Positions 13,040 through 17,085 of a DNA stretch of 64,000 nt are shown in pieces. Origin of the DNA: Auanema rhodensis (lineage: Eukaryota; Animalia; Nematoda); the NCBI GenBank assembly GCA_964057225.1, contig OZ059897.1:13454001-13518000 (forward strand), read 5' to 3'. The notes under the pieces were generated by a model, which worked only from the letters and a program-made list of their open reading frames with translations, was not told the DNA's origin and made no database searches. Both the position numbers and the translations under genes were made by a program. Within the stretch, counting starts at the first letter, position 1, and each line of letters begins with the position of its first letter.

Positions 13040-16000
13040 GGGTCAAACAATGATTCCACTAATTTTTTTCAGAAATTCGTTTTTGTCGTCTCGAAAATAT
13101 GAAGGACAAATATCTAATAAACAAGGGCTATTCCAAGAGAATATTTCAAAATATGAAAAGCTAAAAATCTTTGAACTAAATGAAACTACTAGACTATACT
13201 AGAAATTGATAATCATTTTCTAATCAATTAAAAATTAAAATAAAAATAAAAACAAATTATAAATTGTAGAATTTATATTCATTAATGATATTGAATAGCC
13301 GAATGTTGTTTATTTGACACTTACAAACACTTGCTGCTCTTTTTGAAACTCAGCTCTAATTATCTTATAATTATAATTTAGTATAATGAGTTTGACCTTG
13401 AGAACTTCTGTTAGAAATCATTGAAAAATTATTGTTTCAAAATATATGTATATACATATAGATATAGACAGATATGTATATGAACATTGTATTAAAATTG
13501 TTTTTCTATTTCCTATTGAAATCCAGATAATATATAAAGAGACCTATACATACACACGATAAACAGATATAGAAAGATGACTACTGTTGGTCAAGGACCT
13601 ATCTTTTGCATAACAGTCTGTATCATCTTTATGGATATTCGGGATAGCATTCTCGTATATCTGTTGCATATCTATCACATCCTGAATGCATCATCTTCCC
13701 TCCTCATCAACATATCTCCACAGCGACGACGCCATCGTGGGCATTATCTTCCGAAGTTGCATAGACGATGTCGCGGTCTTCACACCTTTTGCTATTTGTC
13801 ATCACTTAGCTCACCGTTGACTATATATTTGCCTTCAATCTGTCAATTACTAGATTATCTTTTACATTCATCTTTTGTATTTTAGATTATTTTTTGTACT
13901 GATTATAGGGATATGTACGTATGTATGTACTACATATTTGTGGAACAAACAGCTTACATCATCCATCATTTTCTTCGAAATTTTTTCTTGTCTCCAACAC
14001 CCCTATTAACGTTAATCTTATTAATGTTTGTGATAAGCTGTACCTATCTCTAAGGTTCAGTTGTACCAGCCTATAAGGGTATCACGAAGAATATTGCAAC
14101 GTCTTTGTCTCGTGTCAGATGAAACACGAACAAGTACGTCAAATATGTGACAAGCTGCTGTTAGACTTCACGCTCATTGCGTTCTTCTGTTCCAAATTGT
14201 GTCAATCGGGCTTATCAACTTATCACCAAGTTGTTGCACCAATTTCGGCATTAACCCTCGTGCGTATGTGAGTATAGTTCTGATTGATTGATAAGCTTTG
14301 GAGTGTTAGAAACCTTAATTGGGGACAACAGCAAGCGACTGATTGCGTCTTCATTCAGGGCTTGACCCCAAAGGGCAAAAAGGACGAATAATTTTTATAG
14401 GTTGATGGGTCAGAGATATATTAATTTAATTTTGGCATGTTTTTCGTTCATATTTTATTGAAATTATGCTTTCAAGATTTTCAACTAATTTTAAAACGAA
14501 GATTGAGCTAAATGAAATCAAACGATTCTAATCTAAAATGTCAGGATATTTTAATATATGCGATGAACCAAAAATGAAAAACTGATATGTATTTGATTCA
14601 ACTTAATGTTCAACGGAATTTATATTCGAAATTTGATGGTTAAACGTCTAAATGTTACTAATTTTCAGTTTGTTTGGCACAGTTTGAATTTCTTGTCTTG
14701 AACCTTGTTTCTAGGTCTTACCTATAAATCAGAAAAGTTTCCTAATATGTCTGTCGGTCAGATATCATCTTTTCTTCCCTTTTACAGTAAACGATAGTAC
14801 AAAGATGGAATAGTACATATAATTGGATAGAACATAGTGGCAAAGAGATAGACGGGGGATTTTTGAAATAGAATATTATAAGTTCATTATTAATACATAT
14901 ATGTATTTTCAGGTTTTTGATAAAGTTTGATAAACATATTCAAAATATAAATTAGGTTTTCAATTATTCCGATATGAATTAAGTTTTTGATTATTACATG
15001 ATATCCAGTCTATCCTGCTAAAATCTCCTTGCATTACGCTTTGGTAGATGTATCTTCTAATTTATACTAACATAAATCTTTTCCGGCTACACCTTTTTTA
15101 TAACATTAACAACTTTTTTCTTCATTTTACTGAATTTTAATCTTTTAAATCTACCCAAAAAAAAATTAAGACAATTTGAATTGTATTTATAGGTATCTAC
15201 TGATTGCTTCTGTGCCTGTGTGTGGTTCATCTCTTACGTTATCTGGTACAACTCGTCTGGTCTGATTCTCAGGAAGGATACCGTACTATTTGGGTCGCCA
15301 TCTCTCTTTTTCTCATCCAACTTGCGTATGACCCCGCCCGAGACATCACAGGTTTGTCGTCCGTTTCTTATTCTTTTACTTCATCTCTTCCTCTGTCTTC
15401 TGATGTCTTCGTGTCGACGTGAACATCATTACCTCTATTTCTCTCAATTAGTCTTAGTGTATGATCATGTTACCTCGAGGTATCCGTAGTTTCTTATCTA
15501 TCTGTAACTCTCTTTCTTCTCTATGTCTCCTCCTCCTCTTTCACTTCTCTTACCTTTCATTCTATATCAAACGATAGTCCTTCTATCCTTCTAAATCTCC
15601 GATCAGTTCCTCTTTATTTCCGTAATCGTGCTCTTCTTTCTCTCTGTACGAGTCATTATCGTGCCTTGTTACTTTCGGAGAAAATGCTAACCCGAATCAG
15701 AAGGCAGCACCTTGTCGTCATTAACCCAGTGTCTTCTTTTCAGTGTGACTTGATATCTGTTAGATTTGAAAGGTAACAACTTTCTTGAACATTAATTTAT
15801 GAAACTTGCTTTCACCGTTCATAAAGTTGTAAGCTCTTACTTAAACTATTCCTAATCTAGTTTATCCAGAAGTAATTTTTGATCTGCCATCATTTCATTT
15901 CTTTTAATTTATTTGTCTCAATTAATTTTTAACTGCGATTAGAGAAAATATATAGTTACACTAAAATATTTTCATATTTCTTTATATAAATTTAAAATAT

Positions 16001-16174
16001 TTTGTATTTTAATTTTTTCTTTTAATATTTTGAAAATAATTTTCAACCCGTTCATCCATTCAGTTTTTTGTCTACTCTGGTTTTTTATTTTCATAAAACC
16101 TTTTAATCACTACAATCATCAAACATATCGCACTGCTAGCTTCTGTACTACTGACACAATTCTTAACCTGACCT
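13040..16174. promoter_or_regulatory. Cluster of RGGTCA nuclear-receptor half-sites (NHR-23-like) and GATA sites between dpy-2 and dpy-10
   Basis: RGGTCA/TGACCY at 13040, 13393, 14363, 14407, 15329 and 16169, plus 9944 upstream of dpy-2, among many GATA/TATC motifs. Function is inferred from known NHR-23/GATA control of cuticle collagens. Confidence 0.4.
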
Positions 16175-17085
16175 ATCTGACCATCTACTGATCAGAATCC
16201 TTCAGATTTCTCTCTCTGTCTATTTTTCTTTTAACCTCTATCTTTTCTATTTTATTTCTCAATCTCTTTTATCTCTTTAGTTACTATCTTTCCCATAACA
16301 GGCATCTCTTCACTCTTCCAATTCGTGATGTTATTCTCTTATACAAGACGATAATCTTCATTTGCAACTTTTTTTCGTCTACGTTGGGTTATATCCTTCA
16401 TAATCTATTCATATAATTATAATTATCTTTAAAATTGCAATTAAAATTTTATTAATTTAAACATGTAAATATTATTTTTTAGGAGCAACCTGCTGATATC
16501 GTTGTTCAAGTAGAAAAGGATCAACGTGTTGTGACAGTAAAGAAGCTCAAAAACAAGAAGAAGAAGGAGAAAAAAGAAGTCAAAGACAAGAACGGAAAGT
16601 AAGAATATTTCCTTGTTTCAAAATATTTTATTTAATTTCTAAATTTTCAGCTTAGTCTCCAAAGAAGACAAACACGAAACTTTTAGCGTTCTTGATTTTC
16701 TGCGTAGTTTGTTCAAGAGACCAGCGCTCTTGAAGAAGGGAAGAAAGGTAAAATTAAAAAAAAATAGTATAAATTTAATGAAATTATAAATAAATATATG
16801 TTTTGTTTCATGTAAATTCATTTTTCAGTCTTCTTACGCCTTCACTTCTGAATCATCAGCGGCTGACGTTAAAAAGCACTGGTGGTTGGGCAATAATGGG
16901 AACCAAAGCAGACAGCGAAGGGTATGTACTTCAGATTGATTATTTGAGTTTTAAAAACAAACTTCTTATATTATATAATTAATTATAAAAATATTTATTT
17001 ATAGCTGTCCACTGTCATCGCTATCAATGACGAGTCAGCGACAAAGGATATTCCAATTCGTTACCGCTCTACAGATTGTCTTTAG
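15328..17085 (+). CDS. Novel Lys-rich basic protein (~136 aa) in an alternative frame overlapping the dpy-10 start; exons 16483-16598, 16651-16747, 16829-16921, 17005-17085, putative first exon ending 15351
   Basis: Four GT-AG exons join in phase into one stop-free frame: [128 protein letters not shown]. The start (ATG 15328, MTPPETSQ|gtttgt, phase 0) is a best guess. Confidence 0.6.

Follow-up and report, generated by a model that had tools for sequence, protein, structure and literature searches.

A small-protein gene conserved among nematodes shares exons with the dpy-10 collagen gene of Auanema rhodensis

The classic morphology gene dpy-10 encodes a furrow collagen and serves C. elegans work as the standard co-CRISPR marker. 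The C. elegans reference annotation (chromosome II, BX284602.5) includes an unnamed gene of 139 aa with a CDS that overlaps dpy-10, and its rebuilt ORF is exactly 139 aa long. On the minus strand of L010, the CDS of the 139-aa gene extends 8604>7135 and that of dpy-10 7573>6071. Literature searches on dpy-10 uORFs or overlapping frames, T14B4.7, and T14B4.8 found dpy-10 solely as the co-CRISPR marker, and a mass-spectrometry study of non-canonical C. elegans proteins has no entry for dpy-10/T14B4.7 in its supplementary tables. Overlapping frames are also found in the P/C-type bicistronic mRNAs of paramyxoviruses, where the first AUG is weak, the second is strong, and there is no AUG between them. 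Another example is azyx-1/zyx-1 of C. elegans, in which an upstream overlapping ORF affects the translation of the main ORF (PMC10575671).

The small-protein gene described here lies in a window of Auanema rhodensis DNA (the whole stretch of 64,000 nucleotides that was analyzed). It is the orthologue of the C. elegans 139-aa gene, and thus a real gene but not a new one. The novelty implied by an earlier, sequence-only reading of this DNA is too high, since a check for an annotated small gene leads to the existing C. elegans model. In both species the gene immediately precedes dpy-10 on the same strand, and the frame relation is identical. Its exonic overlap with the collagen is 104 nt in C. 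elegans and 107 nt in the window. Both genes have an 81-nt last exon ending in TAG, a K-rich block, the motif GRKASY (GRKSSY in the window), and RQRRLS. A tiny first exon with the ATG, probable in the case of the window, lies some 0.7-1.1 kb upstream in each. This exon encodes MNP (3 codons) in Caenorhabditis and would encode MTPPETSQ (8 codons) in the window, as it does in strongylids. Caenorhabditis has exons 2 and 3 fused, whereas they are separate in the window, and the C-terminal tail is CHRSSNRI in the C. elegans protein and RYRSTDCL in the window. The neighboring gene dpy-2 also differs: it is divergently oriented in Caenorhabditis, whereas in the window its orthologue (10804-12100) is upstream of dpy-10 in tandem orientation.

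As in azyx-1, the window ORF begins 5' of the main AUG, stops inside the main CDS in another frame, and is conserved. By analogy, the small-protein ORF could modulate translation of the main ORF. Unlike azyx-1, the window ORF would have 136 aa in five spliced exons and is conserved over nematode clades III-V, and its probable ATG is on a separate mini-exon missing from the main SL1 mRNA. As for having both ORFs on one transcript, RNA contigs join exons 1-4 to the collagen, without the ATG mini-exon. The locus resembles the P/C type in its AUG contexts, which suggest leaky scanning, and in its overlapping frames. In contrast to that type, however, SL1 trans-splicing probably leaves most of the mRNAs without the first AUG.

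Table 1. Positions of the collagen and small-protein features in the window
Feature	Position	Strand	Basis or content
dpy-10-type cuticle collagen CDS, 346 aa	16896..18207	+	translation; all junctions in RNA contigs
Collagen CDS exons	16896-16921, 17005-17085, 17136-17235, 17284-17617, 17663-17830, 17876-18207	+	RNA-contig junctions
Probable first coding exon, small protein	15328..15351	+	24-nt ATG mini-exon, ATGACCCCGCCCGAGACATCACAG followed by gt, MTPPETSQ; conservation
Exon 1, shared transcript	16483..16598 (116 nt)	+	codes EQPADIVVQVEKDQRVVTVKKLKNKKKKEKKEVKDKNG.. in small-protein frame; RNA-contig junctions
Exon 2	16651..16747 (97 nt)	+	amphipathic helix FSVLDFLRSLFKRPALL and start of GRKSSY motif
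Exon 3	16829..16921 (93 nt)	+	31 residues of small-protein frame; collagen ATG inside at 16896, +1 frame
Exon 4	17005..17085 (81 nt)	+	two-frame; 26 small-protein residues then TAG 17083-85; collagen (G)+26 residues+(S)

The collagen encoded by the features in Table 1 has a Col_cuticle_N region with a transmembrane segment, a furin-type RxxR site, and Gly-X-Y blocks. Its best matches are DPY-10 orthologues, among them BMA-DPY-10, CRE-DPY-10, and strongylid proteins with PF01484 and PF01391.

The sequence-only reading had described four exons (16483-17085) that form one open frame, and this description is correct. They have GT..AG borders and contain 128 codons, and the TAG at 17083-85 is the last three exon bases. 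When the window is checked directly, the exons are preceded by ttttttag, attttcag, tttttcag, and tttatag and followed by gtaaga, gtaaaa, gtatgt, and gtattt. The frame 0 translation from 16483 includes the peptide motifs named in that reading (KKLKNKKKKEKKEVK, FSVLDFLRSLFKR, KHWWLG, and RQRRLS). From the collagen ATG at 16896 to the TAG, 107 exonic nt (26 + 81) are read in two frames, again as described, and the small-protein frame is one base upstream of the collagen frame. In dinucleotide shuffles, some frame is open over 384 nt with P = 0.005. As had also been noted, the 280 exonic nt that precede 16896 are free of ATG in every frame. The same type of shuffle gives P = 0.13 for an ATG-free 280 nt, and synonymous permutation gives P = 0.17-0.61 for the absence of out-of-frame ATGs given the protein sequence. 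Given this Met-free sequence, the lack of out-of-frame ATGs is not improbable in itself, and ATG avoidance is weak as an independent signal.

All three junctions on which the four-exon frame depends (16598>16651, 16747>16829, and 16921>17005) are contained, with 0 mismatches, in RNA-like contigs from two runs. The contigs of runs X1 and X3 (1673 and 1674 nt; 0 mismatches) both start at 16481 (AG plus the exon) and continue as 16481-16598, 16651-16747, 16829-16921, 17005-17085, and onward to the collagen 3'UTR; they are assemblies, so that the joining of exon 1 to the collagen is not proof for single molecules and gives no isoform ratios.

The mini-exon would complete the 136-aa protein. Its donor is correct and its phase relative to 16483 is 0, and it places an in-frame ATG exon exactly at 15328, the start coordinate given by the sequence-only reading. 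In Haemonchus contortus, mapping finds an equivalent 24-nt exon, ATGACCCCGCCCATCGTCGTACAG followed by GT, as exon 1 of a five-exon structure resembling that of the window. Fifteen nt are identical between the two, including 3 nt upstream of the ATG. Gene models start with MTPP in strongylids and with MSPP in Toxocara. No RNA contig of the two runs covers 15328-15351 (depth 0 over 15258-15454), and use of the mini-exon in Auanema rhodensis is therefore suggested by conservation. Its ATG has C at -3, while the collagen ATG has A at -3. Among the species compared, position -3 is C for 7/7 alternative-frame ATGs and a purine for 8/9 collagen ATGs.

The small protein of 136 aa is Met-free after the initiator, Lys/Arg-rich, and mostly disordered, with one amphipathic helix. 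GRKSSY and RQRRLS are its two motifs of the R-R/K-x-S type, and its 11-residue tail is conserved. The homologue of the helix segment is the sole confident helix in an AF2 model that is of low confidence overall (pLDDT 62.8, pTM 0.22). Database queries were the contiguous mRNA-derived orthologues (L007:25-417 of a strongylid and L008:2-406 of a Caenorhabditis) and parts of stored models, rather than the spliced 136-aa protein of the window. With these queries no Pfam family is found, only matches below the cut-off (DUF2406, E = 0.39; GET2, E = 0.017), and the ESM Atlas feature search for the small protein gives no usable match. A protein homologue search with the upstream part of the Diploscapter model (P0002:1-145) has no match; this search was word-limited, and hence its blank result is uninformative. 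The paralogue search in the Auanema rhodensis genome finds the locus itself only. The protein is probably a putative phospho-regulated factor, which would be co-expressed with DPY-10 in the epidermis.

The frame stays open until the same TAG closes it in C. elegans, C. remanei, D. pachys, H. contortus, S. hermaphroditum, B. xylophilus, and T. canis. It is likewise kept open in another strongylid, and eight species have the same stop. In a Brugia contig the tail is also kept: only the last 43 codons are open, and stops interrupt the frame farther upstream. In six other species, too, the exon-4 equivalent has 81 nt with this TAG at its end, and in this exon the small-protein stop sits inside the F/C-Ser codons of the collagen. 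In an alignment of thirteen protein sequences, the conserved motifs are [KR].VK[QE]VK, D.N.N, the helix, GR[KR]xSY (kept in all orthologues), RQRRLS, and RYRS.DCL. The earlier reading had placed AKEDYR of C. elegans DPY-10 in register with RQRRLS of the -1 frame, and this is correct: in C. elegans and in the Caenorhabditis mRNA contig, the collagen frame gives MKNNAKEDYR and the other frame gives EKQRQRRLS. The strongylid mRNA contig (L007) has a leader without ATG and the alternative frame open to the TAG, and the Caenorhabditis contig (L008) has the same layout. As judged from these sequence comparisons, the two-gene arrangement is kept through nematode clades III-V.

Selection was estimated on the 100 codons outside the overlap. 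Between C. elegans and C. remanei, dN/dS is 0.063, and differences at codon positions 1/2/3 are 5/8/38. Other Caenorhabditis pairs have dN/dS of 0.036 and 0.067, and a strongylid pair has 0.18. Indels in the small-protein frame are in-frame only. The overlap itself is nearly frozen in Caenorhabditis, with just 2-4 differences per 105 nt against an upstream pS of 0.57-0.72. Synonymous differences in the collagen frame number 1/30 in the overlap, compared with 73/309 elsewhere in the gene (Fisher p = 0.009). Among the window, strongylids, and Toxocara, collagen third positions differ at 0-2/12 in the last 36 nt of exon 4 and at 20-24/33 in exon 5. Similarly, an RNA contig of organism B differs at 1/80 nt in exon 4 and at 18/102 in the next exon, and the four differences listed upstream (16524/27/30/33) are all synonymous third positions of the small-protein frame. 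At deep divergence, the collagen third positions of the overlap are as variable as the control region. Given the collagen protein, the openness of the overlap has P = 0.09-0.38 per species and is convincing only when combined across lineages. On the codon evidence, the small-protein frame evolves as protein-coding sequence and the overlap is under double constraint, so that the selection on the overlapping frame expected by the earlier reading is borne out by the low upstream dN/dS, the near-frozen overlap, and the common stop. RNA structure was tried as a cause of the frozen overlap and rejected (0 consensus pairs; folding z-scores of -0.81, +0.28, and -0.42).

The locus thus has the two conserved products that the sequence-only reading proposed, as indicated by selection, the shared stop, and the in-frame ATG exon at 15328. 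It is likely that these come from two protein-coding genes with common exons, the dpy-10 collagen and the small protein, initiated by different routes. The strongylid contig starts with GGTTTAATTACCCAAGTTTGAG (SL1) joined directly to the exon-1 equivalent, implying that the collagen mRNA has the ATG-free upstream frame as its leader. The acceptor at 16483 is probably the corresponding SL1 trans-splice site. Pre-mRNAs initiated within the 1.1-kb intron would be trans-spliced there and make the collagen only; with no ATG in the 280-nt leader, scanning ribosomes would begin at the collagen ATG. Pre-mRNAs that include the mini-exon would be translated into the small protein from an ATG in the conserved weak context. 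Ribosomes bypassing this ATG could reach the collagen ATG by leaky scanning because no ATG intervenes. By these two routes the shared exons would be coding sequence and ATG-free leader at once.

A more elaborate reading joins several further parts: a triple constraint on the shared exons, leaky scanning in a set ratio, and a small protein acting on DPY-10. Taken jointly, they are doubtful. The shared exons would code a small basic phosphoprotein, remain AUG-free in all frames as a collagen leader, and have kept this constraint since the common ancestor of clade III-V nematodes. The first AUG would be held weak (C at -3 in seven species), and a single mRNA would supply both DPY-10 and the small protein at a fixed ratio. 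The target of the small protein would be the cytoplasmic N-terminus of DPY-10, its secretion, or furrow-collagen signalling. If all of this were true, a locus that ranks among the most used in C. elegans would conceal a second player.

Alternatively, the upstream frame may be an N-terminal cytoplasmic extension of DPY-10, the out-of-frame mRNA being merely one isoform. The collagen frame could be reached through an alternative 5' donor in TGGTG/GT (16887/16888) joined to 17005, or by +1 ribosomal frameshifting near the TAG. In the window, cac tgg tg/gttggg joined to exon 4 would give KHW-C-CPLSS in frame. Many public models are fused in this way, as in A. ceylanicum and N. brasiliensis (..RHW/CSPLSS and ..RRW/CCPLSS), and also in the S. 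hermaphroditum long isoform, B. okinawaensis, C. bovis, and protein P0001. However, each of these models uses a different ad hoc junction and two omit the transmembrane exons entirely, which is typical of predictors forcing one ORF. The out-of-frame form is found in all RNA contigs, both in the window organism (X1 and X3) and in L007 and L008, and the partly aligned organism-B contig has the identical frame offset. The observed junction 16921>17005 leaves the frames offset by one, although rare isoforms are beyond this evidence. Furthermore, the alternative frame is conserved past the putative donor to the stop (RYRS.DCL), L007 has no GT at the TGGTG position, and the C. elegans curators annotate two separate genes. 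As to frameshifting, CTT precedes the stop in four species, recalling CUU-U-stop +1 sites, but this codon varies by species (CTT, ATT, GTT, TTT, CTG), and there is thus no conserved slippery site. An extension of DPY-10 is therefore improbable.

A slightly smaller chance is left to the switch proposed in the sequence-only reading, in which collagen mRNA arises by SL trans-splicing at 16829, and exons 1-2 occur solely on cis-spliced transcripts making the other protein. A perfect tttttcag does precede 16829, and contig assembly can clip short SL tips, so that minor SL use at this site is compatible with the contigs. Yet the contigs are continuous from exon 1 through exons 2 and 3 and the complete collagen, and in L007 the SL1 is on the exon-1 equivalent, where the first ATG of the mRNA is that of the collagen. 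The acceptor at 16829 has no counterpart in Caenorhabditis and Steinernema. There exons 2 and 3 are fused, and the collagen ATG is deep inside an exon whose start is well upstream of it (by 185 nt in C. remanei and 146 nt in Steinernema). That the upstream exons are an ordinary long 5'UTR, with the open frame and conserved overlap due to an RNA element or chance, is very improbable: although the frame lacks an ATG in the SL1 form, the codon-position pattern of 5/8/38, which by itself effectively refutes this explanation, and dN/dS of 0.04-0.18 are impossible for a non-coding leader, and the indels are exclusively in-frame.

With two genes sharing these exons, the locus is a clean, deeply conserved animal case of coding sequence doubling as an AUG-free 5' leader. 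Many public DPY-10 models of parasitic nematodes are chimeras of both genes; chimeric models are found in Ancylostoma, Nippostrongylus, Haemonchus, Toxocara, Bursaphelenchus, Diploscapter, Steinernema (long isoform), and C. bovis. Because the second conserved gene is in the 5' exons of dpy-10, alleles, deletions, promoter fusions, and RNAi directed at the first ~0.4 kb of the mRNA affect both genes. Note that the usual cn64 site (codon 92) is downstream of the 35-codon overlap.

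The small basic protein frame that precedes and overlaps the start of the cuticle collagen lies in nematode DNA of about 32% G+C, with short introns and TTTTCAG acceptors. The four exons proposed by the sequence-only reading are confirmed by a direct check of borders and frame, joining into one open frame of 128 codons whose TAG (17083-85) is the exon end. By its best matches, the collagen is the dpy-10 orthologue. Its frame is one base off the small-protein frame, and 26 + 81 = 107 exonic nucleotides are read twice, as had been claimed. It is also correct that no ATG precedes the collagen ATG: none is found in any frame across 280 exonic nucleotides, and the four exons of the upstream frame encode no Met. 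By dinucleotide shuffling, so long an open frame has P = 0.005, and the absence of ATG over the 280 nucleotides has P = 0.13. The collagen frame has a second ATG at 17027-17029 (Met17, in SMTSQRQR), a possible alternative collagen start, whose position is conserved in Steinernema, Bursaphelenchus, Toxocara, and Brugia.

Features of the dpy-2/dpy-10 region (window coordinates)
Feature	Position	Strand	Remarks
dpy-2 orthologue	10804-12100	+	upstream of dpy-10, in tandem
Probable ATG mini-exon	start 15328	+	24 nt, then GT donor, phase 0; ATGACCCCGCCCGAGACATCACAG followed by gt; MTPPETSQ
Small-protein exons	16483-16598, 16651-16747, 16829-16921, 17005-17085	+	canonical GT..AG borders in all four
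Cuticle collagen	ATG 16896, within third exon	+	six exons; 346 aa by translation

The start coordinate of the earlier reading is indeed an ATG followed by a donor in phase, and with this mini-exon the window protein would have 136 aa. H. contortus has ATGACCCCGCCCATCGTCGTACAG and GT at the same position, and its five-exon structure is identical to that of the window. Models start with MTPP in strongylids and MSPP in Toxocara. In C. elegans and C. remanei the exon comprises three codons, MNP. In these two species dpy-2 and dpy-10 are divergent with the small-gene ATG exon between them, whereas in the window they are in tandem; in the Gly-X-Y part, the window dpy-2 orthologue and C. elegans DPY-2 are 62% identical.

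Among the DPY-10-like models found with collagen exon 6 as phmmer query, several carry a long N-terminal extension of clear homology to the upstream frame. Orthologous DNA was examined from seven genomic loci and three mRNA contigs. The upstream frame is open and offset by one base in C. elegans, C. remanei, a third Caenorhabditis (contig L008), Diploscapter pachys, Haemonchus contortus, another strongylid (contig L007), Steinernema hermaphroditum, Bursaphelenchus xylophilus, and Toxocara canis, and in all of them it ends at the same TAG, made from collagen Phe/Cys-Ser codons. The exception is Brugia, where this holds for the last 43 codons only. In the Brugia mRNA contig the leader spans 708 nt (L009:1-708) and contains several ATGs and stops; of the upstream frame, only a KKAVKQVK remnant and these codons (..RWLNLFKRYETE..LRYRSTNCL*) can be recognised. 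This reflects either decay of the small gene in filariae or retention of introns in the contig. Aligned proteins share a basic [KR].VK[QE]VK block, D.N.N, a helix, GR[KR]xSY, an aromatic patch, RQRRLS, and a RYRS.DCL tail, in this order, the tail being diverged in Caenorhabditis and Diploscapter. The AKEDYR/RQRRLS pair given in the earlier reading is correct for C. elegans and also stands in a Caenorhabditis mRNA contig. These comparisons support a dual-coding arrangement extending across nematode clades III-V.

The substitution pattern indicates that the upstream frame is protein-coding. In 100 non-overlapping codons, C. elegans and C. remanei differ 5, 8, and 38 times at positions 1, 2, and 3 (dN/dS 0.063); dN/dS is 0.036 and 0.067 in other Caenorhabditis pairs and 0.18 between H. 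contortus and L007, and indels are in frame. The proposed selection on the overlapping frame is seen both in these values (0.036-0.18) and in a nearly frozen overlap. In Caenorhabditis the overlap has 2-4 differences in 105 nt, while synonymous sites just upstream are 57-72% different. Synonymous differences in the collagen frame number 1/30 in the overlap and 73/309 elsewhere in the gene (p = 0.009). In comparisons of the window, two strongylids, and Toxocara, 0-2 of 12 collagen third positions differ over the final 36 nt of exon 4, compared with 20-24 of 33 in exon 5. The few Caenorhabditis overlap changes leave the upstream-frame peptide unaltered and alter the collagen (G/A, R/K, C/Y), and the strongylid changes show the reverse pattern. 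When collagen codons are resampled synonymously, the other frame stays open with P = 0.09-0.38 per species, so that a frame open in five or more independent lineages is improbable by chance. RNA structure as the cause of the constraint is rejected, with no consensus pairs found and folding z-scores of -0.81, +0.28, and -0.42.

Each of two RNA-like runs of the window organism gave a single mismatch-free contig, of 1673 and 1674 nt, starting at 16481 (AG plus exon 1). Every predicted junction, including 16598->16651 and 16747->16829, is used in both, followed by all collagen exons into the 3'UTR; as assemblies, the contigs show that junctions exist and do not give single-molecule linkage or isoform ratios. 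The mini-exon region (15258-15454) has no contig coverage in these runs. A contig from a relative, organism B, has the layout of the window, with the same frame offset because it has 225 nt to the window's 219. It differs from the window at 11/75 nt in exon 1, 1/80 in exon 4, and 18/102 in exon 5; the four exon-1 differences that are listed all fall at synonymous third positions of the upstream frame.

SL1 is joined to the exon-1 equivalent at the start of L007, and the window contigs and L008 reach no further upstream than the exon-1 acceptor. In mRNAs starting at exon 1 the upstream frame has no ATG and the first ATG is that of the collagen; therefore, the upstream coding exons also serve as a leader of 280-307 nt that is free of ATG. 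The small protein would be translated from transcripts that carry the mini-exon. At -3, the small-gene ATG (window 15322-15330) has C in 7/7 species examined, which represent clades III, IV, and V, and the collagen ATG has a purine in 8/9; no ATG lies between the two. Leaky scanning is therefore possible and could yield both proteins from one mRNA, and upstream-frame translation would reduce collagen output from this mRNA class. The alternative of the sequence-only reading, trans-splicing at 16829 for collagen mRNA and cis-splicing from upstream for the other protein, is not supported: SL1 is on the exon-1 equivalent in L007, and an equivalent site is absent in Caenorhabditis and Steinernema, where those exons are fused. 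Of that proposal, the open, conserved dual-coding frame is supported and the switch at 16829 is not.

A small gene overlapping dpy-10 is already annotated in C. elegans. The C. elegans chromosome II table (BX284602.5, locus L010) has a separate 139-residue gene, CDS 8604>7135, overlapping dpy-10 at 7573>6071, and the ORF rebuilt from DNA is exactly 139 aa. No publication on it was found in full-text literature and one supplement. The locus is real and neat, but not a new kind of thing. The small protein has no Pfam family, no Atlas neighbour, and no paralogue found in the window organism's genome. It is basic and largely disordered with two R-R/K-x-S motifs, and its low-confidence AF2 model (pLDDT 62.8) has one confident helix, corresponding to FSVLDFLRSLFKR.

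The extended public DPY-10 models appear to be gene-predictor chimeras fusing this gene to the collagen. Their join point is improvised and different in each, and two skip the transmembrane exons. The apparent chimeras are P0115, P0116, P0118, P0128, P0102, P0004, P0002/P0092, P0093, and P0097, which come from Ancylostoma, Nippostrongylus, Haemonchus, Toxocara, two Bursaphelenchus species, Diploscapter, Steinernema (long isoform), and C. bovis, together with the UniParc entry P0001. For S. hermaphroditum, the NCBI long isoform joins the frames by removing a 49-nt GT..AG "intron" within the dual-coding exon (L002:6409-6457); this segment may be a genuine exitron or an artefact of gene prediction. 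In C. remanei the small-gene model is truncated to a 42-aa stub (L004:3946-4771) because it ignores the exon-1 donor and runs on to a stop.
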